A stretch of DNA of 64,000 nt from Piromyces finnis finn (lineage: Eukaryota; Fungi; Neocallimastigomycota), in contig MCFH01000006.1 of NCBI GenBank assembly GCA_002104945.1, positions 1,054,001 through 1,118,000 of the forward strand, given 5' to 3'. The notes below the pieces were generated by a model, which was given only the letters and a program-made list of their open reading frames with translations, was not told the origin of the DNA and did not search any database. Position numbers and translations under genes: made by a program. This document shows positions 3,601 through 64,000 of the stretch, one piece after another (the first letter of the stretch is position 1; every line of letters starts with the position of its first letter).

Positions 3601-6356
3601 ATACACTTTTTATTTTCATGCTATTATTATCATTATTATGTTTTTTCGATTTTTCTTCATCATCATTTATTGAACCAGTATGACTTAATTCATTAGTTTT
3701 TAAATCTATGATTTGATTTTCGTCTTGTGTCATTTCAAGTGGTTCTTTTTTTGGTTGAGTTGATTCTATTAATTTAACAGTATCCACAGCTTCAATGCTA
3801 TCTTTATTACTATTCGTAAGTCTGAGATTATCCTTGGGAAGATGATCATATTCAATATTTGTAATGTTTGTGAATGAATTATCTTGTTGTAATTGTATTT
3901 TTGAAGGAATTCTATCAATTTCTTCATCATGTTTTTTAATTTCTGTATATTGTTCTGATTTATCTCTGAGTGTACCTTTTTCTTCTTCTTCATTCTTTTT
4001 ACAACTTTCTTCTAGCTTTCTTATATAAGATATGCAGTTTAATGGCATAGAATTAAAAAGATTTCTATTATATTTACTATAATCAGATCGCTCTTCTGGA
4101 TTATTAGACAATAACTTAGAAATAACATACTTTAATTCGAAAGAAAAATTTTGTATTTGTGGTCGTTTAATAATATCATTGTCTTTTTCTCGTTTATCCA
4201 ATTTCCATTTGATTCTATTTCGATATGGACATTCAAATAGCATACATTCATATAGAGTTGCACCAATACTCCATAAATCGCTATTATAGCTTGCTTCAAC
4301 ACCATTAACTATCTCTGGTGCCATATATTGTAAGGTTCCCACATGTCCTTTATTAACAATAATATTATTTTTGGTATAAATAGCTAATCCAAAATCAACT
4401 ATTTTTAAAACAGGTAAATATTGATAATGAATGAGGGAACGAATATCAATCATATTTTCTTGATTCATATTAACATTATCATTTGTATTTTCAAAAGACT
4501 TATTCGATAGTGAAGAGAAAGATTTCTTCATATACATATCATTGTCTTGCCATCCAATATGAACTTTACTTAATTGTTGATGAAGAGATATAAGACTATT
4601 TTTTTTTTCAAAACTGTTACTTTTATCAATATAATATTTCATTGGAAGAGAAGAACTTGATTGAACAAGCATAATATTTTGAGGTTTGATATCTCTGTGA
4701 ATTATTTTCTTTTTGTGAATGTATTCAATAGCAGATACTAATAATAATAATAATAATTATTTTATTTACATTATAAATAAAATATAAAATAAAAAGAATA
4801 AAAAAAAACAATGAAGACGAAATTTATTAAATATAGAAAAAAATAAAAGATATAAATTATATATATTTCAATAAAAGGAATAAATTAAATAAACCTGATA
4901 AAAATTAAAATTTTACCTAATTGTTTATAAAATATTCTAACTACCACTTCATTTAAACAATTTCCCGGTCCAAGGTATGGATTAGCTCCATTATCTAATA
5001 TCCAATTTTTATTTATTATTCCTTTTTTCATAATATATTCTTTAAGGGTTCCTTGATCACAGTACTCTGTAATGATAAATATTTTATTTTTATCAGCCTT
5101 TATTTTTTTTATGTTTTAATGAGGAATGAACGAAAATTTTTATTTATAAGAAAAAGAAATAATTTAATAAATTTAAAAATATTATTAATTTAATAAAAAA
5201 AATAGAAAATAAAAAGATAATAAGGAAGAAATATAATATAATAATACAATAGGGATATGATGATATATACCCATGAAGTAATGAACTTTTGAATATTTAT
5301 ATGATTTAATTCTCTTAAGAATAAAGCTTCCTTTATCGTCTTTTTATACTTTTTTTCTGATTCGACCGTTAATGAATTTTTATCTTTGGCTATATATATG
5401 ACTTTTAAAACATGTTTTATTGGTAATCCTAATGATTTATTGGCGGGTTTTAATTCATTATTTGATGAAGTTCTTTTGACAGAGGATTCTTTTTCGTTAT
5501 CACAATAATTAACAATTGAATTAGAATTTAACGTCAAATTCAAACTGCTATGACTAAATCCACCACCTTCGAATACATTTTTTTCAGTCACCAAATAAAG
5601 TTGAGCATGTGCCGTACTAACTAATTCTTTCAATATTTTATATTTATATTTTTCAAAAGGAATGAACGTTTCCTCTTTAATATAATTTTTATTAATATAA
5701 ACAGAAATTTTTTTCGGTATTGTAATGATTTTAGTTGTATGGTTTGATTCAGCAAGAGCATTGGTAGTATCATCACTATTAGGTATTTCTGTTATTAAAC
5801 TATTATCATTTATATTTAAATTGTCATTATGAATTAATGCTTTAGTAACATCCTCTTCTTTTTTAATTAAATTTTGTGATTGGTTATTAATCTGATGATT
5901 ATATAGATAACTATTAGAAGCATTGGTATTTTTTTCACTTAACACTATTTCATTTTCATCTTTAAATATTTTTATATTATTTATTATGGCTTCTGTAAAT
6001 TGATTTATACTAATATTTGGATTTTTAATAAGCTCTGAAAATGCTATTTCCAAAGCACTCCTATAATTTTCATATTTATTAAATGATGGTGATGACGATG
6101 GATAGTAACAAGATAAGGATTGGAAACAAATAATATTTCCTGGGGTATTTACTGATAATGAATATTCTCCAAAATTTTCATTATCATGATAATTATAAAG
6201 ATAATTGCTTAAATTAGGAAGGGATATTTTATGTTCATCTAATTGATAACTATCTTTTTTTGAATTTATATCCTCATAATTAAAATAATAATCTAACCAA
6301 ACAGTTAATCTACTTCCTAAAGGAATTAAATTAAATATATTTCCATTTCCATTTAT
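680..6356 (-). CDS. Ser/Thr protein kinase (NEK-like), multi-exon, followed by ~1100-aa low-complexity C-terminal tail; exons approx 6356-5271, 5097-4919, 4737-680
   Basis: Spliced by eye via GT/AG sites: HVLKVIY (beta3 Lys), KEALFLRELNHINIQKF (alphaC), IITEYCDQGTL, IHRDIKPQNIML, LKIVDFG, GTLQYMAPE, DLWSIG. ORF track pieces are 5190-6053 and 680-4672. Confidence 0.88.
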
Positions 6357-43218: not shown

Positions 43219-43685
43219 ATGATTTGATTATATAATATATGCTACATATTAAATAATTAATTCTTTTAGAATTTTCTTAAATAAACTTATTTTAATAATA
43301 TGTTAAAATAATAGAAAATAAAATAAAAAGAAAAAATAATAAAATTGTAAATCTTTAAAATTTATTTTTTATTTTTAATTTTGAAAATTATTTAGTTTTT
43401 CTAAATAAAAAGAAAAATAAAATAATATCTTAAAAAAAAAGGTTTTAGTAAGTTAAAAAAAATTAGATAACATTATGTAGGTATTAAATATATAATGAAA
43501 AATTAAAATGAAAAAAGAAATCAAAAAAGATTGATGTAAAATAAAAAAAGATAATATTAATGATTATTATTAAAAATAAAAAAAAAGACAAATAAGAATT
43601 AAAAAAAAAAAAAGTAACATTATATTAAAAGTGTTGTTTATTTGGATTCGATAATTTAGTGTAAATCCTATTTTACTTATAAGAA

Positions 43686-43747
43686 ATCAATCAAAGTGAA
43701 ATACTATGATAATAAATTTATTGAAACTAAAGATTTTATTAAATTAT
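43686..43747 (+). mobile_element. Short diverged relic of the same retrotransposon family immediately upstream of the array
   Basis: atcaatcaaagtgaaatactatgataataaatttattgaaactaaagattttattaaattat aligns to element-internal sequence at ~44243-44307. The last ~40 nt are identical. Confidence 0.8.
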
Positions 43748-43760
43748 ATCCTCTTGGGAA

Positions 43761-45337
43761 ATTAAAGCTCTTAATAACAAGGTTTTGAAAGGGCTTTTCT
43801 CAGTCAGTAAATTCTTAAGAAATCCTAATATTCCTATTCCTTTCAAAAAACTAGTACTTAACTCTCAAGTGATTAGCAGAGTTTCATACTTTGCACCATT
43901 ACTTGGATCCAACAAAGCTAGGTCTAGGATTGCTCAGAAGCATGTTAACAAAGGAATACGATGGGTTGCCGGAGTTCATAAAGCTGTATCGTTTATATCT
44001 TTATACTCTATCTCAAAAGATTTGAATATTCCTCCATTGTCAGCCAAATGTGCGTTAGCTCAGGTTAGATGTTTTAACAAATGGAAAAACTCAAATTGTA
44101 TTATCTCACACCTTGTCAATTACATTCCTAAATTTAGAAAATACACGTGGTGCAAATCAAGTAGGACACTTGATAAAAAATTAAAAAAACATGGAGATGT
44201 TAAAGCAGTTAAAAACTTTTATTGGAAAGATCTCAAAGGGAATTCAATCAAAGCGCAATATTATGATGATAATAAATTTATTGAAACTAAAGATTTTATT
44301 AAATTATGTTATGAGTACCCAGAGTTTGCCTATGGCTTCTACTGGCTATTGAAAGCAAGAAGCGGATACAAGTTGGATGCTAGAGTTGCCAAAGCTGCTA
44401 AATTTGTTGATCCAGTTTGTCCTAACTATTGTCCATGTTGCAAGTGTGGAGATCAAAGTATTAAACATTGGTTATTAGATTGTCCAACATTTAGAGATAT
44501 CCGTATTAAACATTATGATTCTATAGTCCAGCTATTAAATTTTTTCAGTCAACGTAATTCCAATAGTCCTATCAATAATAATGAAAATGTTAATATCAGC
44601 AGAGATAGCAATAACAGTAATAGTAATAGTAATAATATTAATAATAACAATAGTAATAATAACAATAGTAGTAATAGAAATAATAATATTAGTAATGATA
44701 GCAATAGTGAAGATAATAATTCTAATTTAGATAGTAATTTAGTTAATAATAGTAATAGTTCTAATAATCCGATGAATATTAATGTGTATGATTATTCTAG
44801 TGTGTGCAGTAAAATATTTAAATTCCTTCTTGGGGGAAGAAGTTTTAACAATATTAATTACAATTCAAGGGAATGGAAAGAACTTTGTAAGCGTCAGATT
44901 CAATCTGGTACTAACGAAGGAACACCATTCTTGACGGTAACCGCGGAACTTCTAACCAAAATCATGCCTTTTGCTATTGGCCAGCAATGGTCAATGTTCA
45001 AAAGGTTTGAAGCAACATCCAAGAGCGTCAATGCTGAAGAAACAGTAAGACAGGCCAGGAGGGCCAGCGCAACCAATGGAGATCATAATTTTGTCCCATG
45101 ATAAAATTTTGGTCTTTGGCTCGGTGTCCCATTGGAAGTCAAATACAATTATTATACTTTAGTATGATAGTGGCTTTCTTACTTTAATTAAAATTACTAG
45201 AATACATTATACCCAATTTTTATTCATTTGTGTTTATTTAAACATATTTTTTTATTTTTATTTTTATTTTTTAATTTTTTATTACATGTATTATAATTTT
45301 AATTAAATTAATAATAAAGTTTATAATATTTGATGCC

Positions 45338-45370
<33 letters not shown>
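43761..45370 (+). mobile_element. Non-LTR retrotransposon copy 1, 5'-truncated, poly(A) ~30 nt, flanked by 13-bp direct repeat atcctcttgggaa (43748-43760 / 45371-45383)
   Basis: Begins mid-ORF (matches copy 2 from ~49302). Has the post-RT region, CCHC, 3' UTR and poly(A) at 45341-45370. Confidence 0.92.
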
Positions 45371-45374
<4 letters not shown>

Positions 45375-45606
45375 TCTTGGGAACGTGCCTTCATTTATTT
45401 AATAAATGTAGTTTCTCAAGGGGGTCTACTCATGCTCATGGTACTGAGAGAGTAGAAAGAATTAAATCCAAGCATTGCGCAATGGATGCTTGGTTAGTCT
45501 TCAAGGGAAAATTATTAGGACTAAGCTCATGGTACTGAGCGATTAAAAAACATTTTATTCATCGAATTTAAGTATTTGATGAATAAGTTGAATGTTTGAT
45601 ATTCAG

Positions 45607-45947
45607 GTAAGTTTGTATAGTATTTAATTAGAAGAGTAATACATTTTGTTGCTGTATTTTTTCTTTTATTCATGTATTCTTGTAGTACTACTCTTCTCTT
45701 GTAAGAATCCAATGTAGTCAACTTTAGCATTTGCATTGTTCTTTTATATTCATGTAGCTATTGTTGTATTGTTTCTTGTAAGAGACTGATTCACTCTACA
45801 TCATGTAAAAATACTATTCACAAGCTTTCTGGTGTCGACATTCTTGATTCAAATTTTTTACCAATTTAAATATTTAATGAAAAGTAAAGTCAAACAAGTT
45901 TAGTGTCAAAAAGCGAATCGAATTTACTAACAACAAACCAAAACTAG
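45607..45947 (+). other. Candidate 341-nt spliceosomal intron in the retrotransposon 5' UTR (also 51199-51539, 56908-57248, 62526-62866)
   Basis: CAG|GTAAGT donor, TACTAAC branch point and CTAG acceptor 16 nt downstream of it, at identical spacing in four copies. Confidence 0.5.
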
Positions 45948-46142
45948 AATTTTTAAAAAGAGTTAACAACTAGAATTCAAAAAAAGAAACTTTAAACTTT
46001 AAACAAAGTATCGTAACAATTTTTGTACTATCCAGTACTTTTAAGAAGAGAGAGAGAGACAGATTTTTTCCATATACGTTATATTTATAATTTTTATTAG
46101 TATTTATTTTATGTTCAATTTTTTTAATTAGAATTAATTATC

Positions 46143-49100
46143 ATGTCAGTCCTTTATATTAAAGATAAGAATTATATCAGACGTGGTACCCGGTCTTATG
46201 GTATCCCCTTAGATGATATTCGCTCCTTCTTTATCCGTGGTATTCGATCATGGTCAGTAAATATGCTATGGGAAAAACTCGAGGTTATTCTAGAAGATAA
46301 ATTTAATTCAGTTATTAGTGTTAAATATTTTCAGACTTTCAATGATCACTTTTTCTTAGTCAAGGTTCATGGTTCATCGAAAGATTGTATTAAAATCTTA
46401 CACATGTTAAAGAAGAAACTTTCAGTTACCTCAATTTCCTTTTCAGCTCGTAGTAGAAGGAATCACAAATACACTTTTTCCACTCTCAAACGTAAAATTT
46501 TAGTTTCTAATAAACATCAACATTCTATTCAACAATCATTTCAACAATCAGTTCAACAATCTCATCAACAATCCGATCTTCAACTAGATCTTCAACAAGA
46601 TCTTCAACAAGTTTCCAATCATGAAAATATTCCAGATCTACAGCAAACACAATTTCATTCTCAACATTCAACAATTAATTCTAATAGCTCTATCAACTCT
46701 GATAACAGTTCAATAGTTGATAGTTCTTCAGTTTCACAGCCATCTAGTAATAGTTCTACTTATTCCTCTGATGCATCATCCATTAATAACGATGACTTTA
46801 ATAATAATAATAATAGCAACGATTCTTCCTCATCCAACAAGCCTGATAACTTTTCTTTTTGTCTTAGTTGGAACACCAATGGGTGGAATCACGAAAAGAG
46901 AGATAGTATTAGCTATTTCACAGCTATTTTCAAACCATTATTTTTATGTTTCCAAGAAACTGGTAATGGTTCTGGATCGAATACAGATTATCCTTGTCGT
47001 GTTACTTTGCGAAACTATAGACACTTTTTCAAGAAAGCTGACGAATCAGTTCCGGGAATGAGAGGTTTATATTTAGGTTTTCACAATTCATGTCAAGCCT
47101 CACTTGAAAACTTCTCTGGAAAGTATATTATTTCTATTTATACTTTTAGTCTCTGGAATAGATTCAAATGCTCGATTGGTAATGTTTATATGCCTCATAG
47201 TCATCACAACATCTATGTTGATCATGCAAAGTTAGAAGTTCGCTTGTGGTTACAAACTCATTCATCCCATCCATCGATTCTTGTTGGTGATTTTAATATG
47301 TCTAAAGTAAAATTATCCAACTGGTTATCAACTAATGGATTAGGAGATTGGGAAATTCTTCCGCTTAGAGGGTCTACTATCTCTTGGACTCGAGGTGATC
47401 AATCTTCCGACATTGACCATGCTCTTATCAATTCGAAGATGAAAGATCTTATTCACTCAGGATCATTTATAAATAATTTTTATCCTGTATCAGACCATAA
47501 GCCACTTCTTATTAATGGTAAAATTATTCCTATGGAAGATTTTTCTAATGACTTTAATGTTCCTAAGAAAATTCTGAAATGGAATAGATTAAAATGTATT
47601 GAGGAAAAGGAATCTATTCTCAGTCATAATAAATTCCAAATACTTTCAGCAAAATCCAACGATCCTAATGTTTCTACAGATGAACTTTCCAAAGAGTTTA
47701 CTTCAACTGCTTTCTCAATTGCAGACGAGCTCAGTATTACTTCAGCAAATAATGTTATAAAGTCTTCATTTCATATTTCACAACAAATTTTTAATCTTCA
47801 AAAAATCAAAATGAAGTTGTATAAGAGATTTAAAAAAGAAAGAATTTATGATATAGATGAATTTATTAAAAGAATTAAAATCTACCGTAAACTCATTGAT
47901 TACATCCACAAAAGATGTAATGAATTTAGGAAGCAAGAATATCTTCATTGGATTAAAACAGGATGTGAGTATATGAAGAGTCATAATCCTAAGAAGGCCT
48001 GGAAATGGATCAAGAAAACTGCAAAAATTGGAAAAGATTCTTTCTTTATTGCTCAACCAATTAAAAATAAAAATGGAGAATTAGTTGTTGCTACGGAAGA
48101 ACAACTAGAAGTGTGGCATGATCATTTCGAAAAGCTTGCATCAGACCCAAGTGGTGTAAGTCTTGATTTGGAGCATTGGTATGAAGAACCAATGAATAAA
48201 CGTTTTTCACTTCCTATGCTTGATGAGTGGGATATCAACCAAGATATTAGTATTGATGAAGTCAAGTCAGCTATCCTCACTACTCCAAATTATAAAGCAT
48301 CAGGTCCGGATGGTATTCCAATTGAATTTTACAAAGCATTAATTCCATCAAGTAATGATTCTAATAATGCTACAGATAATAATTCTTCTGGTAATACTAC
48401 TTCAGATAATGATGCTCATGGTTTAAATTTTATTCTTAAATTATTCAACCGTATTTGGGATGGAGATTTCCCCAACTCATGGAATGAATCCAGTATTGTT
48501 TCTATTCCTAAGAAGGGAGATTTGACAGATTGTGATAACTATCGAGGTATATCACTTATCAATAATGGTATTAAGTTGATTTCCAAAATTGTCACCACTA
48601 GAATCTCAGAATATGGTCTAAAGAATAATTTCATTAGACCTGAACAATTTGGTTTTCGAAAAAAGGAAGAAAGTATTAGTCTTTTCATTTCAATCCAAGA
48701 AATATGCCGTAGACGTCAATTAGATAATAAAGAGACATATTTGGCCTTTTTAGATCTCAGGAAAGCATACGATTCAGTCCCAATCGGTAATATTCTCCAT
48801 AAATTAGATTGTTTAGGAATCCGAGGTAAGAGTCTACAATTTATCAAAAATTTATATTTAACATCTAAGGCTAATGTCAAATTAGATGGACAATTCTCGA
48901 AATCTTTTGATGTGAAGAAAGGTGTCCGTCAAGGATGCCCTCTTTCTCCTATTCTCTTTAATCTCTTTATTAATGATATATTTAGAGAGTGCGAAGATCT
49001 AGGAGTCAGTTTAGGTGACACTCGATGCTGTGGTGGACTTTTTGCAGATGATATAGTTATTTGTGCTCCAACAAGAGGATGCTTAAAAAAGATGCTTAGA

Positions 49101-50666
49101 AGAGTTAATGAATGGGCATTGTATAATGAAATGGAATTTGGTATCCAGAAATGTTCAACGATGGTGATTCGTCCTGAATCAATAGAAAATCAGAACAAGA
49201 GAGATCCAACATTTTACTTAGCAGGACAACCCATTCCAACTACTGATTGTTATACTTATCTTGGTGTTCCATTTGATAAGAATCTGTCCCTTAAACCAGT
49301 AATTAAAGCTCTTAATAACAAGGTTTTGAAAGGGCTTTTCTCAGTCAGTAAATTCTTAAGAAATCCTAATATTCCTATTCCTTTCAAAAAACTAGTACTT
49401 AACTCACAAGTGATTAGCAGAGTTTCATACTTTGCACCATTACTTGGATCCAACAAAGCTAGGTCTAGGATTGCTCAGAAGCATGTTAACAAAGGAATAC
49501 GATGGGTTGCCGGAGTTCATAAAGCTGTATCGTTTATATCTTTATACTCTATCTCAAAAGATTTGAATATTCCTCCATTGTCAGCCAAATGTGCGTTAGC
49601 TCAGGTTAGATGTTTTAACAAATGGAAAAACTCAAATTGTATTATCTCACACCTTGTCAATTACATTCCTAAATTTAGAAAATACACGTGGTGCAAATCA
49701 AGTAGGACACTTGATAAAAAACTAAAGAAACATGGAGATGTTAAAGCAGTTAAAAACTTTTATTGGAAAGATCTCAAAAGGAATTCAATCAAAGCGCAAT
49801 ATTATGATGATAATAAATTTATTGAAACTAAAGATTTTATTAAATTATGTTATGAATACCCAGAGTTTGCCTATGGCTTCTACTGGCTATTGAAAGCAAG
49901 AAGCGGATACAAGTTGGATGCTAGAGTTGCCAAAGCTGCTAAATTTGTTGATCCAGTTTGTCCTAACTACTGTCCATGTTGCAAGTGTGGAGATCAAAGT
50001 ATTAAACATTGGTTATTAGATTGTCCAACATTTAGAGATATCCGTATTAAACATTATGATTCCATAGTCCAGCTATTAAATTTTTTCAGTCAACGTAATT
50101 CCAATAGTCCTATCAATAATAATGAAATTGATAATATCAGTAGAGATAGCAATAACATTAATAGTAATAGTAACAATAGTAGTAATAACAATAGTAATAG
50201 TAACAATAGTAATAGTAACAATAGTAATAATAACAATAATAGAAATAATAATATTAGTAATGATAGCAATAGTGAAGATAATAATTCTAATTTAGATAGT
50301 AATTTAGTTAATGATAGTAATAGTTCTAATAATCCGGTGAATATTAATGTGTATGATTATTCTAGTGTGTGCAGTGAAATATTTAAATTCCTTCTTGGGG
50401 GAAGAAGTTTTAACAATATTAATTACAATTCAAGGGAATGGAAAGAACTTTGTAAGCGTCAGATTCAATCTGGTACTAACGAAGGAACACCATTCTTGAC
50501 GGTAACCGCGGAACTTCTAACCAAAATCATGCCTTTTGCTATTGGCCAGCAATGGACAATGTTCAAAAGGTTTGAAGCAACATCCAAGAGCGTCAATGCT
50601 GAAGAAACAGTAAGACAGGCCAGGAGGGCCAGCGCAACCAATGGAGATCATAATTTTGTTCCATGA
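46143..50666 (+). CDS. 1507-aa retrotransposon polyprotein: RRM-like N-terminus, APE-type endonuclease, reverse transcriptase, CCHC zinc knuckle, Asn-rich insert
   Basis: APE: SWNTNG, FQET, GDFN, SDIDH, SDHKP. RT: ASGPDG, YRGISL, QFGFR, FLDLRKAYDSV, GVRQGCPLSPILFNLFIND, LFADD, YTYLG. C-terminal CPCCKCGDQSIKHWLLDC. Confidence 0.95.
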   Translation: MSVLYIKDKNYIRRGTRSYGIPLDDIRSFFIRGIRSWSVNMLWEKLEVILEDKFNSVISVKYFQTFNDHFFLVKVHGSSKDCIKILHMLKKKLSVTSISFSARSRRNHKYTFSTLKRKILVSNKHQHSIQQSFQQSVQQSHQQSDLQLDLQQDLQQVSNHENIPDLQQTQFHSQHSTINSNSSINSDNSSIVDSSSVSQPSSNSSTYSSDASSINNDDFNNNNNSNDSSSSNKPDNFSFCLSWNTNGWNHEKRDSISYFTAIFKPLFLCFQETGNGSGSNTDYPCRVTLRNYRHFFKKADESVPGMRGLYLGFHNSCQASLENFSGKYIISIYTFSLWNRFKCSIGNVYMPHSHHNIYVDHAKLEVRLWLQTHSSHPSILVGDFNMSKVKLSNWLSTNGLGDWEILPLRGSTISWTRGDQSSDIDHALINSKMKDLIHSGSFINNFYPVSDHKPLLINGKIIPMEDFSNDFNVPKKILKWNRLKCIEEKESILSHNKFQILSAKSNDPNVSTDELSKEFTSTAFSIADELSITSANNVIKSSFHISQQIFNLQKIKMKLYKRFKKERIYDIDEFIKRIKIYRKLIDYIHKRCNEFRKQEYLHWIKTGCEYMKSHNPKKAWKWIKKTAKIGKDSFFIAQPIKNKNGELVVATEEQLEVWHDHFEKLASDPSGVSLDLEHWYEEPMNKRFSLPMLDEWDINQDISIDEVKSAILTTPNYKASGPDGIPIEFYKALIPSSNDSNNATDNNSSGNTTSDNDAHGLNFILKLFNRIWDGDFPNSWNESSIVSIPKKGDLTDCDNYRGISLINNGIKLISKIVTTRISEYGLKNNFIRPEQFGFRKKEESISLFISIQEICRRRQLDNKETYLAFLDLRKAYDSVPIGNILHKLDCLGIRGKSLQFIKNLYLTSKANVKLDGQFSKSFDVKKGVRQGCPLSPILFNLFINDIFRECEDLGVSLGDTRCCGGLFADDIVICAPTRGCLKKMLRRVNEWALYNEMEFGIQKCSTMVIRPESIENQNKRDPTFYLAGQPIPTTDCYTYLGVPFDKNLSLKPVIKALNNKVLKGLFSVSKFLRNPNIPIPFKKLVLNSQVISRVSYFAPLLGSNKARSRIAQKHVNKGIRWVAGVHKAVSFISLYSISKDLNIPPLSAKCALAQVRCFNKWKNSNCIISHLVNYIPKFRKYTWCKSSRTLDKKLKKHGDVKAVKNFYWKDLKRNSIKAQYYDDNKFIETKDFIKLCYEYPEFAYGFYWLLKARSGYKLDARVAKAAKFVDPVCPNYCPCCKCGDQSIKHWLLDCPTFRDIRIKHYDSIVQLLNFFSQRNSNSPINNNEIDNISRDSNNINSNSNNSSNNNSNSNNSNSNNSNNNNNRNNNISNDSNSEDNNSNLDSNLVNDSNSSNNPVNINVYDYSSVCSEIFKFLLGGRSFNNINYNSREWKELCKRQIQSGTNEGTPFLTVTAELLTKIMPFAIGQQWTMFKRFEATSKSVNAEETVRQARRASATNGDHNFVP

Positions 50667-50679
50667 CAAAATTTTGATC
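50646..50679 (+). other. 14-bp stem-loop spanning the retrotransposon stop codon (also 45081-45114 and in copies 3, 4)
   Basis: gatcataattttgt-tccatg-acaaaattttgatc, 13 of 14 positions paired. Confidence 0.6.
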
Positions 50680-50902
50680 TTTGGCTCGGTGTCCCATTGG
50701 AAGTCAAATACAATTATTATACTTTAGTATGATAGTGGCTTTCTTACTTTAATTAAAATTACTAGAATACATTATACCCAATTTTTATTCATTTGTGTTT
50801 AATTAAACATATTTTTTTTATTTTTATTTTTATTTTTATTTTTATATTACATGTATTATAATTTTAATTAAATTAATAATAAAGTTTAAAATATTTGATG
50901 CC

Positions 50903-50950
<48 letters not shown>

Positions 50951-50954
<4 letters not shown>

Positions 50955-53900
50955 ATGCTTGGTGCCCTCTTAGGAACGTGCCTTCATTTATTTAATAATG
51001 GAGTTTATCAAGGGGGTCTACTCATGCTCATGGTACTGAGAGAGTAGAAAGAATTAAATCCAAGCATTGCGCAATGGATGCTTGGTTAGTCTTTAAGGGA
51101 AAATTATTAGGACTAAGCTCATGGTACTGAGCGATTAAAAAACATTTTATTCATCGAATTTAAGTATTTGATGAATAAGTTGAATGTTTGATACTCAGGT
51201 AAGTTTGTATAGTATTTAATTAGAAGAGTAATACATTTTGTTGCTGTATTTTTTCTTTTATTCATGTATTCATGTAGTACTACTCTTCTCTTGTAAGAAT
51301 CCAATGTAGTCAACTTTAGCATTTGCATTGTATTTTTATATTCATGTAGCTATTGTTGTATTGTTTCTTGTAAGAGACTGATTCACTCTACATCATGTAA
51401 AAATACTATTCACAAGCTTTCTGGTGTCGACATTCTTGATTCAAATTTTTTACCAATTTAAATATTTAATGAAAAGTAAAGTCAAACAATTTTAGTGTCA
51501 AAAAGCGAATCGAATTTACTAACAATAAACCAAAACTAGAATTTTTAAAGAAAATTTACAACTAGAATTCAAAAAAAAAAAAAAAAAGAAACTTTAAACA
51601 AAGCATCGTAACAATTTTTGTACTATCCAGTACTTTTAAGAAGAGAGAGAGAGACAGATTTTTTTCCATATACGTTATATTTGTAATTTTTATTAGTATT
51701 TATTTTATATTCAATTTTTTTAATTAGAATTAATTATCATGTCAGTCCTTTATATTAAAGATAAGAATTATATCAGACGTGGTACCCGGTCTTTGGTATC
51801 CCCTTAGATGATATTCGCTCCTTCTTTATCCGTGGTATTCGATCATGGTCAGTAAATATGCTATGGGAAAAACTCGAGGTTATTCTAGATGATAAATTTA
51901 ATTCAGTTATTAGTGTTAAATATTTTCAGACTTTCAATGATCACTTTTTCTTAGTCAAGGTTCATGGTTCATCAAAAGATTGTATTAAAATCTTACACAT
52001 GTTAAAGAAGAAACTTTCAGTTACCTCAATTTCCTTTTCAGCTCGTAGTAGAAGGAATCACAAATACACTTTTTCCACTCTCAAACGTAAAATTTTAGTT
52101 TCTAATAAACATCAACATTCTATTCAACAATCATTTCAACAATCAGTTCAACAATCTCATCAACAATCCGATCTTCAACAAGATCTTCAACAAGATCTTC
52201 AACAAGTTTCCCATCATGAAAATATTCCAGATCTACAGCAAATACAATTTCAATCTCAACATTCAACAATTAATTCTAATAGCTCTATCAACTCTGATAA
52301 CAGTTCAATAGTTGATAGTTCTTCAGTTTCACAGCCATCTAGTAATAGTTCTACTTATTCCTCTGATGCATCATCCATTAATAACGATGACTTTAATAAT
52401 AATAATAGCAACGATTCTTCCTCATCCAACAAGCCTGATAACTTTTCTTTTTGTCTTAGTTGGAACACCAATGGGTGGAATCACGAAAAGAGAGATAGTA
52501 TTAGCTATTTCACAGCTATTTTCAAACCATTATTTCTATGTTTCCAAGAAACTGGTAATGGTTCTGGATCGAATACAGATTATCCTTGTCGTGTTACTTT
52601 GCGAAACTATAGACACTTTTTCAAGAAAGCTGACGAATCAGTTCCAGGAATGAGAGGTTTATATTTAGGTTTTCACAATTCGTGTCAAGCCTCACTTGAA
52701 AACTTCTCTGGAAAGTATATTATTTCTATTTATACTTTTAGTCTCTGGAATAGATTCAAATGCTCGATTGGTAATGTTTATATGCCTCATAGTCATCACA
52801 ACATCTATGTTGATCATGCAAAGTTAGAAGTTCGCTTGTGGTTACAAACTCATTCATCCCATCCATCGATTCTTGTTGGTGATTTTAATATGTCTAAAGT
52901 AAAATTATCCAACTGGTTATCAACTAATGGATTAGGAGATTGGGAAATTCTTCCGCTTAGAGGGTCGACTATCTCTTGGACTCGAGGTGATCAATCTTCC
53001 GACATTGACCATGCTCTTATCAATTCGAAGATGAAAGATCTTATTCACTCAGGATCATTTATAAATAATTTTTATCCTGTATCAGACCATAAGCCACTTC
53101 TTATTAATGGTAAAATTATTCCTATGGAAGATTTTTCTAATGACTTTAATGTTCCTAAGAAAATTCTGAAATGGAATAGATTAAAATGTATTGAGGAAAA
53201 GGAATCTATTCTCAGTCATAATAAATTCCAAATACTTTCAGCAAAATTCAACGATCCTAATGTTTCTACAGATGAACTTTCCAAAGAGTTTACTTCAACT
53301 GCTTTTTCAATTGCAGACGAGCTCAGTATTACCTCAGCAAATAATGTTATAAAGTCTTCATTTCATATTTCACAACAAATTTTTAATCTTCAAAAAATCA
53401 AAATGAAGTTGTATAAGAGTTTTAAAAAAGAAAGAATTTATGATATAGATGAATTTATTAAAAGAATTAAAATCTACCGTAAGCTCATTGATTACATCCA
53501 CAAAAGATGTAATGAATTTAGGAAACAAGAATATCTTCATTGGATTAAAACAGGATGTGAGTATATGAAGAGTCATAATCCTAAGAAGGCCTGGAAATGG
53601 ATCAAGAAAACTGCAAAAATTGGAAAAGATTCTTTCTTTATTGCTCAACCAATTAAAAATAAAAATGGAGAATTAGTTGTTGCTACGGAAGAACAACTAG
53701 ATGTGTGGCATGATCATTTCGAAAATCTTGCATCAGATCCAAGTGGTGTAAGTCTTGATTTGGAGCATTGGTATGAAGAACCAATGAATAAACGTTTTTC
53801 ACTTCCTATGCTTGATGAGTGGGATATCAACCAAGATATTAGTATTGATGAAGTCAAGTCAGCTATCCTCTCTACTCCAAATTATAAAGCATCAGGTCCG

Positions 53901-56491
53901 GATGGTATTCCAATTGAATTTTACAAAGCATTAATTCCATCAAGTAATGATTCTAATAATGCTACAGTAATAATTCTTCTGGTAATACTACTTCAGATAA
54001 TGATGCTCATGGTTTAAATTTTATTCTTAAATTATTTAACCGTATTTGGGATGGAGATTTCCCCAACTCATGGAATGAATCCAGTATTGTTTCTATTCCT
54101 AAGAAGGGAGATTTGACAGATTGTGATAACTATCGAGGTATATCACTTATCAATAATGGTATTAAGTTGATCTCCAAAATTGTCACCACTAGAATCTCAG
54201 AATATGGTCTAAAGAATAATTTCATTAGACCTGAACAATTTGGTTTTCGAAAAAAGGAAGAAAGTATCAGTCTTTTCATTTCAATCCAAGAAATATGCCG
54301 TAGACGTCAATTAGATAATAAAGAGACATATTTGGCCTTTTTAGATCTCAGGAAAGCATACGATTCAGTCCCAATCGGTAATATTCTCCATAAATTAGAT
54401 TGTTTAGGAATCCGAGGTAAGAGTTTACAATTTATCAAAAATTTATATTTAACATCTAAGGCTAATGTCAAATTAGATGGACAATTCTCGAAATCTTTTG
54501 ATGTGAAGAAAGGAGTCCGTCAAGGTTGCCCACTTTCTCCTATTCTCTTTAATCTCTTTATTAATGATATATTTAAAGAGTGTGAAGATCTAGGAGTCAG
54601 TTTAGGTGACACTCGATGCTGTGGTGGACTTTTTGCAGATGATATAGTTATTTGTGCTCCAACAAGAGGATGCTTAAAAAAGATGCTTAGAAGAGTTAAT
54701 GAATGGGCCTTGTATAATGAAATGGAATTTGGTATCCAGAAATGTTCAACGATGGTGATTCGTCCTGAATCAATAGAAAATCAGAACAAGAGAGATCCAA
54801 CATTTTACTAGCAGGACAACCCATTCCAACTACTGATTGCTATACTTATCTTGGTGTTCCATTTGATAAGAATTTGTCCCTTAAACCAGTAATTAAAGCT
54901 CTTAATAACAAGGTTTTGAAAGGACTTTTCTCAGTCAGTAAATTCTTAAGAAATCCTAATATTCCTATTCCTTTCAAAAAACTAGTACTTAACTCACAAG
55001 TGATTAGCAGAGTTTCATACTTTGCACCATTACTTGGATCCAACAAAGCTAGGTCTAGGATTGCTCAGAAGCATGTTAACAAAGGAATACGATGGGTTGC
55101 CGGAGTTCATAAAGCTGTATCGTTTATATCTTTATACTCTATCTCAAAAGATTTGAATATTCCTCCATTGTCAGCCAAATGTGCATTAGCTCAGGTTAGA
55201 TGTTTTAACAAATGGAAAAACTCAAATTGTATTATCTCACACCTTGTCAATTACATTCCTAAATTTAGAAAATACACGTGGTGCAAATCAAGTAGGACAC
55301 TTGATAAAAAACTAAAGAAGCATGGAGATGTTAAAGCAGTTAAAAACTTTTATTGGAAAGATCTCAAAGGGAATTCAATCAAAGCGCAATATTATGATGA
55401 TAATAAATTTATTGAAACTAAAGATTTTATTAAATTATGTTATGAGTACCCAGAGTTTGCCTATGGCTTCTACTGGCTATTGAAAGCAAGAAGCGGATAC
55501 AAGTTGGATGCTAGAGTTGCCAAAGCTGCCAAATTTGTTGATCCAGTTTGTCCTAACTACTGTCCATGTTGCAAGTGTGGAGATCAAAGTATTAAACATT
55601 GGTTATTAGATTGTCCAACATTTAGAGATATCCGTATTAAACATTATGATTCCATAGTCCAGCTATTAAATTTTTTCAGTCAACGTAATTCCAATAGTCC
55701 TATCAATAATAATGAAATTGATAATATCAGTAGAGATAGAATAACATAATAGTAATAGTAACAATAATAATAACAATAGTAATAATAACAATAGTAATAG
55801 TAACAATAGTAATAATAACAATAGTAGTAATAGAAATAATAATATTAGTAATGATAGCAATAGTGAAGATAATAATTCTAATTTAGATAGTAATTTAGTT
55901 AATGATAGTAATAGTTCTAATAATCCGGTGAATATTAATGTGTATGATTATTCTAGTGTGTGCAGTAAAATATTTAAATTCCTTCTTGGGGGAAGAAGTT
56001 TTAACAATATCAATTACAATTCAAGGGAATGGAAAGAACTTTGTAAGCGTCAGATTCAATCTGGTACTAATGAAGGAACACCATTCTTGACGGTAACCGC
56101 GGAACTTCTAACCAAAATCATGCCTTTTGCTATTGGCCAGCAATGGTCAATGTTCAAAAGGTTTGAAGCAACATCCAAGAGCGTCAATGCTGAAGAAACA
56201 GTAAGACAGGCCAGGAGGGCCAGCGCAACCAATGGAGATCATAATTTTGTTCCATGACAAAATTTTGATCTTTGGCTCGGTGTCCCATTGGAAGTCAAAT
56301 ACAATTATTATACTTTAGTATGATAGTGGCTTTCTTACTTTAATTAAAATTACTAGAATACATTATACCCAATTTTTATTCATTTGTGTTTATTTAAACA
56401 TATTTTTTTTATTTTTATTTTATTTTAATTTTTTATTACATGTATTATAATTTTAATTAAATTAATAATAAAGTTTAAAATATTTGATGCC

Positions 56492-56567
<76 letters not shown>
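50951..56567 (+). mobile_element. Non-LTR retrotransposon copy 3, full length, ORF (ATG 51739, stop 56257) broken by several 1-nt deletions, poly(A) ~73 nt
   Basis: Near-identical to copy 2. Frameshifts at ~51794, ~53968, ~54809 and ~55740. Poly(A) at 56495-56567. Confidence 0.93.
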
Positions 56568-56569
<2 letters not shown>

Positions 56570-56794
56570 CATTTATTTAATAAATGTAGTTTCTCAAGGG
56601 GTCTACTCATGCTCATGGTACTGAGAGAGTAGAAAGAATTAAATCCAAGTATTGCGCAATGGATGCTTGGTGCCCTCTTAGGAACGTGCCTTCATTTATT
56701 TAATAAATGTAGTTTCTCAAGGGGGTCTACTCATGCTCATGGTACTGAGAGAGTAGAAAGAATTAAATCCAAGCATTGCGCAATGGATGCTTGG
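56568..56794 (+). repeat. Tandem ~124-bp 5' monomers (partial 56568-56670 + full 56671-56794); single full monomers also at 45371-45493, 50963-51085, 62290-62412
   Basis: Unit tgccctcttaggaacgtgcc...gcgcaatggatgcttgg is directly repeated. Right-end monomer fragments precede the full monomer in copies 3, 4 and 5. Confidence 0.9.
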
Positions 56795-59700
56795 TTAGTC
56801 TTTAAGGGAAAATTATTAGGACTAAGCTCATGGTACTGAGCGATTAAAAAACATTTTATTCATCGAATTTAAGTATTTGATGAATAAGTTGAATGTTTGA
56901 TATTCAGGTAAGTTTGTATAGTATTTAATTAGAAGAGTAATACATTTTGTTGCTGTATTTTTTCTTTTATTCATGTATTCATGTAGTACTACTCTTCTCT
57001 TGTAAGAATCCAATGTAGTCAACTTTAGCATTTGCATTGTATTTTTATATTCATGTAGCTATTGTTGTATTGTTTCTTGTAAGAGACTGATTCACTCTAC
57101 ATCATGTAAAAATACTATTCACAAGCTTTCTGGTGTCGACATTCTTGATTCAAATTTTTTACCAATTTAAATATTTAATGAAAAGTAAAGTCAAACAAGT
57201 TTAGTGTCAAAAAGCGAATCGAATTTACTAACAACAAACCAAAACTAGAATTTTTAAAGAAAATTTACAACTAGAATTCAAAAAAAGAAACTTTAAACAA
57301 AGCATCGTAACAATTTTTGTACTATCCAGTACTTTTAAGAAGAGAGAGAGAGACAGATTTTTTTCCATATACGTTATATTTATAATTTTTATTAGTATTT
57401 ATTTTATATTCAATATTTTTAATTAGAATTTATTATCATGTCAGTCCTTTATATTAAAGACAAGAATTATATCAGACGTGGTACCCGGTCTTATGGTATC
57501 CCCTTAGATGATATTCGCTCCTTCTTTATCCGTGGTATTCGATCATGGTCAGTAAATATGCTATGGGAAAAACTCGAGGTTATTCTAGAAGATAAATTTA
57601 ATTCAGTTATTAGTGTTAAATATTTTCAGACTTTCAATGATCACTTTTTCTTAGTCAAGGTTCATGGTTCATCGAAAGATTGTATTAAAATCTTACACAT
57701 GTTAAAGAAGAAACTTTCAGTTACCTCAATTTCCTTTTCAGCTCGTAGTAGAAGGAATCACAAATACACTTTTTCCACTCTCAAACGTAAAATTTTAGTT
57801 TCTAATAAACATCAACATTCTATTCAACAATCATTTCAACAATCAGTTCAACAATCTCATCAACAATCCGATCTTCAACTAGATCTTCAACAAGATCTTC
57901 AACAAGTTTCCCATCATGAAAATATTCCAGATCTACAGCAAACACAATTTCAATCTCAACATTCAACAATTAATTCTAATAGCTCTATCAACTCTGATAA
58001 CAGTTCAATAGTTGATAGTTCTTCAGTTTCACAGCCATCTAGTAATAGTTCTACTTATTCCTCTGATGCATCATCCATTAATAACGATGACTTTAATAAT
58101 AATAATAATAGCAACGATTCTTCCTCATCCAACAAGCCTGATAACTTTTCTTTTTGTCTTAGTTGGAACACCAATGGGTGGAATCACGAAAAGAGAGATA
58201 GTATTAGCTATTTCACAGCTATTTTCAAACCATTATTTTATGTTTCCAAGAAACTGGTAATGGTTCTGGATCGAATACAGATTATCCTTGTCGTGTTACT
58301 TTGCGAAACTATAGACACTTTTTCAAGAAAGCTGACGAATCAGTTCCGGGAATGAGAGGTTTATATTTAGGTTTTCACAATTCATGTCAAGCCTCACTTG
58401 AAAACTTCTCTGGAAAGTATATTATTTCTATTTATACTTTTAGTCTCTGGAATAGATTCAAATGCTCGATTGGAATGTTTATATGCCTCATAGTCATCAC
58501 AACATCTATGTTGATCATGCAAAGTTAGAAGTTCGCTTGTGGTTACAAACTCATTCATCCCATCCATCGATTCTTGTTGGTGATTTTAATATGTCTAAAG
58601 TAAAATTATCCAACTGGTTATCAACTAATGGATTAGGAGATTGGGAAATTCTTCCGCTTAGAGGGTCTACTATCTCTTGGACTCGAGGTGATCAATCTTC
58701 CGACATTGACCATGCTCTTATCAATTCGAAGATGAAAGATCTTATTCACTCAGGATCATTTATAAATAATTTTTATCCTGTATCAGACCATAAGCCACTT
58801 CTTATTAATGGTAAAATTATTCCTATGGAAGATTTTTCTAATGACTTTAATGTTCCTAAGAAAATTCTGAAATGGAATAGATTAAAATGTATTGAGGAAA
58901 AGGAATCTATTCTCAGTCATAATAAATTCCAAATACTTTCAGCAAAATTCAACGATCCTAATGTTTCTACAGATGAACTTTCCAAAGAGTTTACTTCAAC
59001 TGCTTTTTCAATTGCAGACGAGCTCAGTATTACCTCAGCAAATAATGTTATAAAGTCTTCATTTCATATTTCACAACAAATTTTTAATCTTCAAAAAATC
59101 AAAATGAAGTTGTATAAGAGATTTAAAAAAGAAAGAATTTATGATATAGATGAATTTATTAAAAGAATTAAAATCTACCGTAAACTCATTGATTACATCC
59201 ACAAAAGATGTAATGAATTTAGGAAGCAAGAATATCTTCATTGGATTAAAACAGGATGTGAGTATATGAAGAGTCATAATCCTAAGAAGGCCTGGAAATG
59301 GATCAAGAAAACTGCAAAAATTGGAAAAGATTCTTTCTTTATTGCTCAACCAATTAAAAATAAAAATGGAGAATTAGTTGTTGCTACGGAAGAACAACTA
59401 GATGTGTGGCATGATCATTTCGAAAATCTTGCATCAGATCCAAGTGGTGTAAGTCTTGATTTGGAGCATTGGTATGAAGAACCAACGAATAAACGTTTTT
59501 CACTTCCTATGCTTGATGAGTGGGATATCAACCAAGATATTAGTATTGATGAAGTCAAGTCAGCTATCCTCACTACTCCAAATTATAAAGCATCAGGTCC
59601 GGATGGTATTCCAATTGAATTTTACAAAGCATTAGTTCCATCAAGTAATGATTCTAATAATGCTACAGATAATAATTCTTCTGGTAATACTACTTCAGAT

Positions 59701-62194
59701 AATGATGCTCATGGTTTAAATTTTATTCTTAAATTATTCAACCGTATTTGGGATGGAGATTTCCCCAACTCATGGAATGAATCCAGTATTGTTTCTATTC
59801 CTAAGAAGGGAGATTTGACAGATTGTGATAACTATCGAGGTATATCACTTATCAATAATGGTATTAAGTTGATTTCCAAAATTGTCACCACTAGAATCTC
59901 AGAATATGGTTTAAAGAATAATTTCATTAGACCTGAACAATTTGGTTTTCGAAAAAAGGAAGAAAGTATTAGTCTTTTCATTTCAATCCAAGAAATATGC
60001 CGTAGACGTCAATTAGATAATAAAGAGACATATTTGGCCTTTTTAGATCTCAGGAAAGCATACGATTCAGTCCCAATCGGTAATATTCTCCATAAATTAG
60101 ATTGTTTAGGAATCCGAGGTAAGAGTCTACAATTTATCAAAAATTTATATTTAACATCTAAGGCTAATGTCAAATTAGATGGACAATTCTCGAAATCTTT
60201 TGATGTGAAGAAAGGAGTCCGTCAAGGTTGCCCTCTTTCTCCTATTCTCTTTAATCTCTTTATTAATGATATATTTAGAGAGTGCGAAGATCTAGGAGTC
60301 AGTTTAGGTGACACTCGATGCTGTGGTGGACTTTTTGCAGATGATATAGTTATTTGTGCTCCAACAAGAGGATGCTTAAAAAAGATGCTTAGAAGAGTTA
60401 ATGAATGGGCCTTGTATAATGAAATGGAATTTGGTATCCAGAAATGTTCAACGATGGTGATTCGTCCTGAATCAATAGAAAATCAGAACAAGAGAGATCC
60501 AACATTTTACTTAGCAGGACAACCCATTCCAACTACTGATTGTTATACTTATCTTGGTGTTCCATTTGATAAGAATCTGTCCCTTAAACCAGTAATTAAA
60601 GCTCTTAATAACAAGGTTTTGAAAGGGCTTTTCTCAGTCAGTAAATTCTTAAGAAATCCTAATATTCCTATTCCTTTCAAAAAACTAGTACTTAACTCAC
60701 AAGTGATTAGCAGAGTTTCATACTTTGCACCATTACTTGGATCCAACAAAGCTAGGTCTAGGATTGCTCAGAAGCATGTTAACAAAGGAATACGATGGGT
60801 TGCCGGAGTTCATAAAGCTGTATCGTTTATATCTTTATACTCTATTTCAAAAGATTTGAATATTCCTCCATTGTCAGCCAAATGTGCGTTAGCTCAGGTT
60901 AGATGTTTTAACAAATGGAAAAACTCAAATTGTATTATCTCACACCTTGTCAATTACATTCCTAAATTTAGAAAATACACGTGGTGCAAATCAAGTAGGA
61001 CACTTGATAAAAAATTAAAGAAACATGGAGATGTTAAAGCAGTTAAAAACTTTTATTGGAAAGATCTCAAAGGGAATTCAATCAAAGCGCAATATTATGA
61101 TGATAATAAATTTATTGAAACTAAAGATTTTATTAAATTATGTTATGAGTACCCAGAGTTTGCCTATGGCTTCTACTGGCTATTGAAAGCAAGAAGCGGA
61201 TACAAGTTGGATGCTAGAGTTGCCAAAGCTGCCAAATTTGTTGATCCAGTTTGTCCTAACTACTGTCCATGTTGCAAGTGTGGAGATCAAAGTATTAAAC
61301 ATTGGTTATTAGATTGTCCAACATTTAGAGATATCCGTATTAAACATTATGATTCTATAGTCCAGCTATTAAATTTTTTCAGTCAACGTAATTCCAATAG
61401 TCCTATCAATAATAATGAAATTGATAATATCAGTAGAGATAGTAATAACATTAATAGTAATAGTAACAATAGTAGTAATAACAATAGTAATAGTAACAAT
61501 AGTAATAGTAACAATAGTAATAATAACAATAATAGAAATAATAATATTAGTAATGATAGCAATAGTGAAGATAATAATTCTAATTTAGATAGTAATTTAG
61601 TTAATGATAGTAATAGTTCTAATAATCCGGTGAATATTAATGTGTATGATTATTCTAGTGTGTGCAGTAAAATATTTAAATTCCTTCTTGGGGGAAGAAG
61701 TTTTAACAATATTAATTACAATTCAAGGGAATGGAAAGAACTTTGTAAGCGTCAGATTCAATCTGGTACTAACGAAGGAACACCATTCTTGACGGTAACC
61801 GCGGAACTTCTAACCAAAATCATGCCTTTTGCTATTGGCCAGCAATGGTCAATGTTCAAAAGGTTTGAAGCAACATCCAAGAGCGTCAATGCTGAAGAAA
61901 CAGTAAGACAGGCCAGGAGGGCCAGCGCAACCAATGGAGATCATAATTTTGTTCCATGACAAAATTTTGATCTTTGGCTCGGTGTCCCATTGGAAGTCAA
62001 ATACAATTATTATACTTTAGTATGATAGTGGCTTTCTTACTTTAATTAAAATTACTAGAATACATTATACCCAATTTTTATTCATTTGTGTTTATTTAAA
62101 CATATTTTTTTTTATTTTTATTTTATTTTAATTTTTTATTACATGTATTATAATTTTAATTAAATTAATAATAAAGTTTAAAATATTTGATGCC

Positions 62195-62254
<60 letters not shown>
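56568..62254 (+). mobile_element. Non-LTR retrotransposon copy 4, full length with 1.8 5' monomers, ORF (57438-61959) with two 1-nt deletions, poly(A) ~57 nt
   Basis: Frameshifts at ~58236 (T-run) and ~58474. Poly(A) at 62198-62254. Confidence 0.93.
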
Positions 62255-62256
<2 letters not shown>

Positions 62257-64000
62257 AGAAAGAAAAAAAAATAAATCCAATATGCTTGGTGCCCTCTTAG
62301 GAACGTGCCTTCATTTATTTAATAATGGAGTTTATCAAGGGGGTCTACTCATGCTCATGGTACTGAGAGAGTAGAAAGAATTAAATCCAAGCATTGCGCA
62401 ATGGATGCTTGGTTAGTCTTTAAGGGAAAATTATTAGGACTAAGCTCATGGTACTGAGCGATTAAAAAACATTTTATTCATCGAATTTAAGTATTTGATG
62501 AATAAGTTGAATGTTTGATATTCAGGTAAGTTTGTATAGTATTTAATTAGAAGAGTAATACATTTTGTTGCTGTATTTTTTCTTTTATTCATGTATTCAT
62601 GTAGTACTACTCTTCTCTTGTAAGAATCCAATGTAGTCAACTTTAGCATTTGCATTGTATTTTTATATTCATGTAGCTATTGTTGTATTGTTTCTTGTAA
62701 GAGACTGATTCACTCTACATCATGTAAAAATACTATTCACAAGCTTTCTGGTGTCGACATTCTTGATTCAAATTTTTTACCAATTTAAATATTTAATGAA
62801 AAGTAAAGTCAAACAAGTTTAGTGTCAAAAAGCGATTCGAATTTACTAACAACAAACCAAAACTAGAATTTTTAAAGAAAATTTACAACTAGAATTCAAA
62901 AAAAGAAACTTTAAACAAAGCATCGTAACAATTTTTGTACTATCCAGTACTTTTAAGAAGAGAGAGAGAGACAGATTTTTTTTCCATATACGTTATATTT
63001 ATAATTTTTATTAGTATTTATTTTATATTCAATATTTTTTAATTAGAATTATTATCATGTCAGTCCTTTATATTAAAGATAAGAATTATATCAGACGTGG
63101 TACCCGGTCTTATGGTATCCCCTTAGATGATATTCGCTCCTTCTTTATCCGTGGTATTCGATCATGGTCAGTAAATATGCTATGGGAAAAACTCGAGGTT
63201 ATTCTAGAAGATAAATTTAATTCAGTTATTAGTGTTAAATATTTTCAGACTTTCAATGATCACTTTTTCTTAGTCAAGGTTCATGGTTCATCGAAAGATT
63301 GTATTAAAATCTTACACATGTTAAAGAAGAAACTTTCAGTTACCTCAATTTCCTTTTCAGCTCGTAGTAGAAGGAATCACAAATACACTTTTTCCACTCT
63401 CAAACGTAAAATTTTAGTTTCTAATAAACATCAACATTCTATTCAACAATCATTTCAACAATCAGTTCAACAATCTCATCAACAATCCGATCTTCAACTA
63501 GATCTTCAACAAGATCTTCAACAAGTTTCCAATCATGAAAATATTCCAGATCTACAGCAAACACAATTTCAATCTCAACATTCAACAATTAATTCTAATA
63601 GCTCTATCAACTCTGATAACAGTTCAATAGTTGATAGTTCTTCAGTTTCACAGCCATCTAGTAATAGTTCTACTTATTCCTCTGATGCATCATCCATTAA
63701 TAACGATGACTTTAATAATAATAATAATAGCAACGATTCTTCCTCATCCAACAAGCCTGATAACTTTTCTTTTTGTCTTAGTTGGAACACCAATGGGTGG
63801 AATCACGAAAAGAGAGATAGTATTAGCTATTTCACAGCTATTTTCAAACCATTATTTTTATGTTTCCAAGAAACTGGTAATGGTTCTGGATCGAATACAG
63901 ATTATCCTTGTCGTGTTACTTTGCGAAACTATAGACACTTTTTCAAGAAAGCTGACGAATCAGTTCCGGGAATGAGAGGTTTATATTTAGGTTTTCACAA
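62255..64000 (+). mobile_element. Non-LTR retrotransposon copy 5 (5' part; ORF from ATG 63057 runs open off the window end)
   Basis: Same 5' UTR and ORF start as copies 2-4. Confidence 0.92.

Follow-up and report, generated by a model that had tools for sequence, protein, structure and literature searches.

A tail-to-head LINE array beside a cellulase gene of Piromyces finnis, probably built by stepwise self-integration

Array layout and element structure

The window analysed here is a 64,000-nucleotide stretch of DNA from the anaerobic fungus Piromyces finnis (C189:1054001-1118000), in which positions 43748-64000 are taken up by plus-strand copies of a single family of long interspersed nuclear elements (LINEs), namely a partial one (c0) and four that are full length (c1-c4). 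The right side of this array was examined in the next 40 kb of the contig, which brings in a sixth unit (c5), and the whole comprises six plus-strand copies joined tail to head over a total of ~24.8 kb. No host DNA separates the units; each of the four poly(A) runs in the window directly abuts the 5′ untranslated region (UTR) of the next element. An earlier note on this DNA had described at least five same-strand, abutting copies with no host sequence between them, and this description is borne out, the count now standing at six with c5 included. The repeat period is ~5.6 kb; the spacings, previously given as 5596, 5699 and 5619 bp, measure 5595, 5700 and 5619 bp, which leaves the periodicity itself intact. 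On its contig, which is 1.314 Mb long, the array spans C189:1.098-1.122 Mb; the nearer contig end is ~190 kb away, and genes flank the array on the left. Below, q denotes the element coordinate numbered on c1, and window-equivalent positions carry the window numbering past 64000 into the contig.

The leftmost unit, c0 (43761-45371), is a 5′-truncated copy covering q3930-5565, 96.9% identical to c1 and ending in a poly(A) of 31 A (45341-45371). It lies inside the 5′ tip of c1: the 12-13 bp sequence ATCCTCTTGGGAA, which forms the first bases of c1, flanks it at 43748-43760 and again at 45371-45383, and since this second copy is the start of c1, c0 inserted into the c1 tip with an ordinary target-site duplication (TSD). 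A large internal deletion, in a copy joined to the RNA 5′ end, was set aside as the explanation of c0 in favour of a 5′-truncated insertion with the 12-13 bp TSD. The full-length units follow, c1 (45372-50951) starting at q1 and ending in 46 A (50906-50951), c2 (50952-56567) with its open reading frame (ORF) in four pieces and 73 A (56495-56567), and c3 (56568-62254) with its ORF in two pieces and 57 A (62198-62254). The last of them, c4 (62255-64000), is cut by the window end and continues to window-equivalent 67855 (L001:3855), with 18 A. The differing poly(A) lengths reported before (~30, 45, 73 and 57) are thus confirmed at 31, 46, 73 and 57 A. Finally, c5 (L001:3838-4376) is a partial unit, q4229-4303 joined to q5075-5547, with 9 A; it closes the array at window-equivalent ~68376 and, judged by its 92% identity, is clearly older than the other units.

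Older family sequence lies on both flanks. Directly upstream of the array, blastn and blastx detect a fragment of a diverged copy (43683-43747, plus strand; q4410-4477, 90% identity), and to the right they detect a diverged 3′-UTR remnant on the same strand (window-equivalent 68529-68741, 79-85% identity); given these pieces, the whole pile probably sits within a still older copy. The earlier note had proposed extending the array to its right end and looking there for a matching TSD. The end was found at c5, and a search for an outer TSD around the whole array returned only an A-run common to both sides. The array occupies the 3′ flank of an intact gene (40936-43218, plus strand), which ends ~400 bp upstream of it and encodes a secreted GH48 cellulase that carries two CBM10 (fungal dockerin) repeats. 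This gene and the very AT-rich intergenic DNA are in keeping with an anaerobic gut fungus. No tRNA gene was found within window positions 36000-64000 or the following 10 kb, which rules out tRNA-gene targeting at this locus, and Rfam gave no match to a known ribozyme or other RNA family at E ≤ 1 in 43000-52000, the segment that holds the c0/c1 and c1/c2 junctions.

The element is an APE-type (apurinic/apyrimidinic endonuclease-like) non-LTR (lacking long terminal repeats) retrotransposon, with a reverse transcriptase (RT), an APE endonuclease, poly(A) tails, variable 5′ truncation and TSDs of variable sequence. In c1 it consists of a 771-nt 5′ UTR (45372-46142), a single intact ORF of 1507 aa (46143-50666, plus strand), a 239-nt 3′ UTR and the tail. 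The endonuclease domain lies at about aa 241-452 of the ORF (46863-47498) and is recognized by Pfam Exo_endo_phos at E = 2.2e-7 (31.3 bits, the cut-off being 24.5, with this segment scanned alone); the QET, GDFN and SDH endonuclease motifs are present in the translation. The RT domain occupies aa 788-1043 (48504-49271; Pfam RVT_1, E = 1.2e-35), followed by a C-terminal CCHC knuckle with a weak zf-RVT match. There is no separate ORF1 upstream of an ORF2, the single ORF instead having an unassigned N-terminal region of 230 aa. The nearest solved structure to the RT is human L1 ORF2p (E = 5e-33), compared with 3e-18 for R2, and the element would appear L1-like, an assignment that reflects L1 ORF2p as its best solved relative.

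The 5′ UTR opens with a 122-nt monomer, and these first 122 nt occur in other copies as tandem monomers of variable number, which accounts for much of the 5′-end variation. Two sizes of monomer exist, full (~122 nt) and short (~67 nt), arranged in irregular arrays of 1 to ~7 per copy (for example at C1:904291-904901 and at tail-to-head junctions). The c1 ORF also contains Asn/Ser/Gln-rich stretches of low complexity at 46500-46830 (aa 120-230) and 50130-50400 (aa 1330-1420), the latter differing in length among copies (alignment columns 4888-4985). The stretch coding for the CCHC knuckle is a recurrent breakpoint, with a TSD at q4598-4613 and fragment ends at q4606; at C1:1482742-1483109, a truncated copy is inserted in a diverged (87%) related LINE at the homologous spot.

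Relationships among the array units

Four junctions yield four different first bases of the ~122-nt 5′ monomer, in agreement with the differing 5′ start points that had been noted before. Relative to c1, c2 extends 13-14 nt further upstream within the monomer; in c3 an extra partial monomer (q19-123) precedes the full one, so that this copy begins at q19 of the added unit, and c4 starts ~38 nt further upstream. Pairwise, c1-c4 differ by 30-76 substitutions, the largest distance being that between c1 and c2 (76). When 16 full-length copies are compared in a maximum-likelihood tree and distance matrix, c1-c4 come out interspersed with contig C1 copies, and none are mutual nearest relatives: c3 lies 14 substitutions from the copy at C1:1183570, compared with 30 from c4, 39 from c1 and 51 from c2. 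Private substitutions number 8, 10, 0 and 15 in c1, c2, c3 and c4, respectively, an uneven distribution (chi-square, p ~0.003), c3 having none among the 16 copies compared. Variants common to array units form no block or alternating pattern, and this, together with the scatter of the units in the tree, removes a block duplication of c1-c2 into c3-c4 that alternating identities had hinted at.

These observations bear directly on tandem or segmental duplication, by which one or two copies would have been amplified through unequal crossing-over or replication slippage. Such a process does operate elsewhere in the family. At C1:1538337-1541163, three units with a period of 942-945 bp are alike in their 5′ truncation at q4605 (q4605-5563) and their 11-nt junction/TSD and have near-equal tails, and a block of ~9.2 kb is repeated at C1:1542099-1552154. 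Here an array is already expanding by unequal exchange and has begun to turn from a transposon into a tandem repeat. The identical junctions and mutually closest units found there are absent from the window array, where 5′ end and tail length differ at every junction. The distinct 5′ ends, the tree, the TSD of c0 and the age of c5 exclude simple tandem duplication for this array, and we regard an origin of this kind as very improbable; the rejection of a single segmental amplification, already voiced in the earlier note, is upheld by the four 5′ ends, by c0 having its own TSD and by c1-c4 lying nearer to copies on other contigs.

The same differences speak to the possibility of a long-read assembly error in which LINE copies were chained or expanded. 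At ~25 kb the array exceeds many read lengths, and an artefact of assembly could include the frame breaks of c2-c4, some of which may be homopolymer errors; c1 is the sole unit among c1-c4 with an intact ORF. The units nevertheless differ in substitutions, 5′ end and tail, and the same junction type recurs at many loci on many contigs, and we give an assembly artefact hardly any credence. As assembled, the locus holds at least three separate integrations, with c1-c4 derived from four different RNAs.

Insertion of the family into its own copies

The clearest evidence on target choice comes from events defined by a TSD. Five solo copies carry host TSDs of 11-14 bp that are mutually unrelated in sequence, with a nick context of ~TA|T. 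In a sample of ~200 kb of contig C1, six insertions are nested in family copies in the same direction and are flanked by TSDs of element sequence: TCTACTGGCTAT and CTGTCCATGTTGCAA, both within one truncated copy; TAATAAAGCTTA and TGTTTCTATTCCTAAGA; one TSD of ~30 bp; and TGCTGAAGAAA, the 11 nt with which a copy truncated at q5224 begins. Together with c0 these make seven, and ordinary insertion into resident copies is thereby proven. Seven of the 12 TSD-defined events thus lie in the family itself, against ~3.5% expected (binomial p ~5e-8), and all seven nested events run in the same direction as the resident copy (p = 0.008). In two events the nick falls exactly at the first base of the resident copy, and in the remaining nested events little of the old copy lies upstream, ~60-335 nt; small as the sample is, it hints at an insertion hotspot near resident 5′ ends.

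Pattern searches over 56,455,805 bases in 232 contigs extend this picture to the genome. A 23-nt pattern from the element 3′ end has 650 matches, compared with none for the reversed control, and the monomer/UTR junction is kept in 269 copies; the family is estimated to make up 3-4% of the genome. A scan of metagenomes for the element 3′ end gave no match. Neighbour statistics were computed for the first 100 of the 650 3′ ends in contig order, 44 of which have a same-strand neighbour within 6.5 kb where ~7.5 would be expected. Neighbour pairs at this distance are exclusively of the same strand (30 to 0), whereas pairs 6.5-50 kb apart include 11 of the same and 9 of opposite strand, which rules out an orientation bias tied to replication direction or to larger domains. 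Opposite-strand neighbours within 6.5 kb would number ~3.7 pairs by chance, and inverted pairs may be avoided or lost. Clusters among the same 100 ends number 14, each with 2-10 ends; contig C1 holds four of these, and clusters occur on both strands and along the contigs. In the contig C1 sample, 20 of 29 tails (~70%) lead straight into same-strand family sequence and none into the opposite strand. The window array is accordingly no lone exception in a dispersed family, a prospect that the earlier note had entertained and that the 44 close neighbours and these 20 tails contradict; its suggestion of a self-targeting family is supported by the uniform strand of all 30 close pairs and by the nested insertions.

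A narrow pattern finds 21 tail-to-head junctions genome-wide, and six of these contain spacers of 7-21 nt. A test of the spacers as TSD copies gave no support for that interpretation: one 16-nt spacer is unique in the genome and a second belongs to another repeat. This other repeat, which holds a G+C-rich stretch with TCTCATGTTCCA, directly follows the tail of the LINE at C1:283321-283440, C1:1541476-1541590 and C1:1550677-1550790, and 12 nt of it make up the spacer of the tail-to-head junction at C189:1021931; it may be a short interspersed nuclear element (SINE) or a preferred target.

Clustering of this kind could also arise passively, if insertion were random and survival best in old copies that serve as harmless landing pads, so that nesting would reflect selection and not targeting. 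In its favour, insertions into genes would be lost, and the family amounts to only a few per cent of the genome. What it does not predict is the strict common orientation of close pairs and of nested events, c0 included, or the exact nicks at a resident 5′ tip, twice over. The intergenic DNA of the window is moreover very AT-rich and plentiful, and the excess of TSD-defined events within the family is large. We therefore consider passive accumulation improbable.

Stepwise growth, template jumping and known systems

The reading that we favour, at a probability of roughly 60%, is that the array is a stepwise pile-up of separately reverse-transcribed copies of a young, abundant APE-type LINE with a strong bias towards self-integration. 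Several steps are recorded at the locus itself: an old diverged copy was present, c5 lies beside its remnant, c1-c4, from different source lineages and each with a 5′ end and tail of its own, stacked upstream of c5, and c0 came later, into the first 12-13 nt of c1. Each integration would take place through target-primed reverse transcription (TPRT), in which the endonuclease would nick the bottom strand at the TA|T context of the top strand and the RNA would be copied from its poly(A) tail, leaving a TSD of 11-17 bp. The family would prefer sites inside or beside its own resident copies, above all 5′ tips and tail/head boundaries, and would invariably keep to their orientation. We infer that c1-c4 integrated separately, one at a time, each entering via a nick in or at the edge of its neighbour's poly(A), where the TSDs would be invisible runs of A.

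Several results weigh against this reading. No TSD is visible at the c1/c2, c2/c3 and c3/c4 junctions; elsewhere in the genome, c1, c2 and c3 have nearest relatives at much the same distance, ~18-21 difference-equivalents (converted from bit scores), so that the ages of these three units are not clearly different; and no sequence motif explaining the self-preference was found, TA|T being ubiquitous in the AT-rich genome. The detailed census, in addition, consists of ~200 kb of contig C1 and of pattern counts, with tail contexts classified by hand. A further point concerns the many 5′ junctions that carry short sense-strand pieces of the element whose remainder is not found downstream, a hallmark of template switching. 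Upstream of full-length copies, mosaics of 30-130 nt sense pieces from scattered parts of the element occur at C1:277461-277648, C178:254948-255057 and C199:8253-8438, and these look like the products of serial template switching late in reverse transcription. Frequent switching by this RT makes an origin in one event plausible.

In such a single integration, TPRT would begin on the RNA of c4, and the RT would jump from its 5′ end to the poly(A) of the next template, taking up c3, c2 and c1 in turn, with c0 and c5 as separate events. The run from c1 to c4 without a TSD or a host base between units is as expected, and all four units reach the monomer region, as if the RT ran to the RNA ends; the similar distances of c1-c3 to their nearest relatives agree with it, and R2 proteins are known to yield multi-template products and head-to-tail repeats (PMC11371274). 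Template jumping cannot account, however, for nested insertions whose 11-17 bp TSDs consist of element sequence, nor for c0 in the c1 tip. Four different 5′ positions in the monomer would demand very heterogeneous RNA 5′ ends, the private substitution counts are unequal (0 to 15), and the spacers in junctions elsewhere are longer than typical non-templated additions. On balance we judge serial jumping possible, though unlikely, as the origin of c1-c4. The repeated independent retrotransposition put forward in the earlier note is thus supported, c0 being a separate insertion, while the c1/c2, c2/c3 and c3/c4 junctions could also stem from a single RT-jump integration and the data do not separate the two; by either route, each unit is a separately reverse-transcribed RNA.

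How stepwise self-integration would find its targets is a matter for a guess. Element RNA might pair with a resident copy's complementary strand, and this would account for the strict orientation, and the endonuclease would then be sent to the edge of the paired region, at the 5′ tip or the tail. Such homology-guided target choice is at present a doubtful proposal; if true, it would amount to orientation-specific self-recognition by an APE-type LINE at any genomic location, in contrast to telomeric or fixed-site targeting. Dispersed insertion is the usual expectation for APE-type LINEs. With ~650 recent copies and integration mostly into or beside itself, strictly head to tail and at many interstitial loci, this family offers a natural system for asking how a LINE recognizes its own DNA and whether template jumping builds arrays in vivo. 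One array already expanding by unequal exchange makes the first steps from transposon to tandem repeat visible. The family is also of relevance to the assembly and annotation of anaerobic-fungus genomes, in which such arrays adjoin cellulase genes.

The statement in the earlier note that tandem LINE arrays are known mainly from telomeric or target-specific elements is incomplete, since Zepp and Cnl1 clusters and LINE dimers of Drosophila are known as well. A search of the literature on LINEs in Neocallimastigomycota or Piromyces finnis returned nothing relevant; self-nesting has precedents in a few elements of algae, yeast and flies, with no description found for this fungus. The Zepp LINEs of Chlorella and Coccomyxa form nested self-clusters of tens of kb (PMC3446292) and resemble the Piromyces element as poly(A) LINEs in clusters of nested own copies, integration into resident copies of the same family being seen here in the seven events with TSDs of element sequence. 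Zepp, however, keeps strictly to one cluster per chromosome, at the putative centromere or the termini (PMC3446292), whereas the Piromyces element forms many interstitial clusters per contig, is not confined to one centromeric or subtelomeric cluster per chromosome and has many solo copies in ordinary intergenic DNA. The two also differ in host, base composition and element structure, the Piromyces element having its single 1507-aa ORF and monomeric 5′ UTR. Cnl1 of Cryptococcus neoformans, likewise a fungal non-LTR element, builds arrays of 5-80 kb from full-length and truncated copies, which change in size by recombination (bioRxiv 10.1101/2021.08.11.455996). Cnl1 arrays are subtelomeric, unlike the present array, which lies far from the contig ends beside a cellulase gene, with others scattered along contigs.

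In Drosophila, tail-to-internal and head-to-tail dimers of non-LTR elements arise by double insertion, with distinct 5′ truncations and a copy of the target in the junction (PMC5932611). Consecutive insertion followed by expansion through unequal exchange is common to these dimers and to the array at C1:1538-1541 kb, but the dimers are occasional in each family, whereas here most sampled tails abut family sequence in strictly the same orientation. HeT-A, TART and TAHRE, and also R1 and R2, share head-to-tail, individually tailed copies with variable 5′ truncation. They target chromosome ends or one host sequence; the Piromyces array is interstitial, without the chromosome-end location and orientation of HeT-A/TART, and the unrelated host TSDs of the solo copies reveal no single conserved host target as in the R1, R2 and Tx1 group. 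R2 furthermore uses a restriction-like endonuclease and the Piromyces element an APE. The template-jump concatemers made by R2 proteins in reconstituted or engineered systems (PMC11371274) are similar in being head-to-tail repeats without target sequence between units; they are not established as a natural route to arrays and cannot account for the nested TSD events. What is distinctive in Piromyces is that an APE-type element of an early-diverging fungus nests in itself throughout the family, at multiple interstitial loci and in strict orientation.

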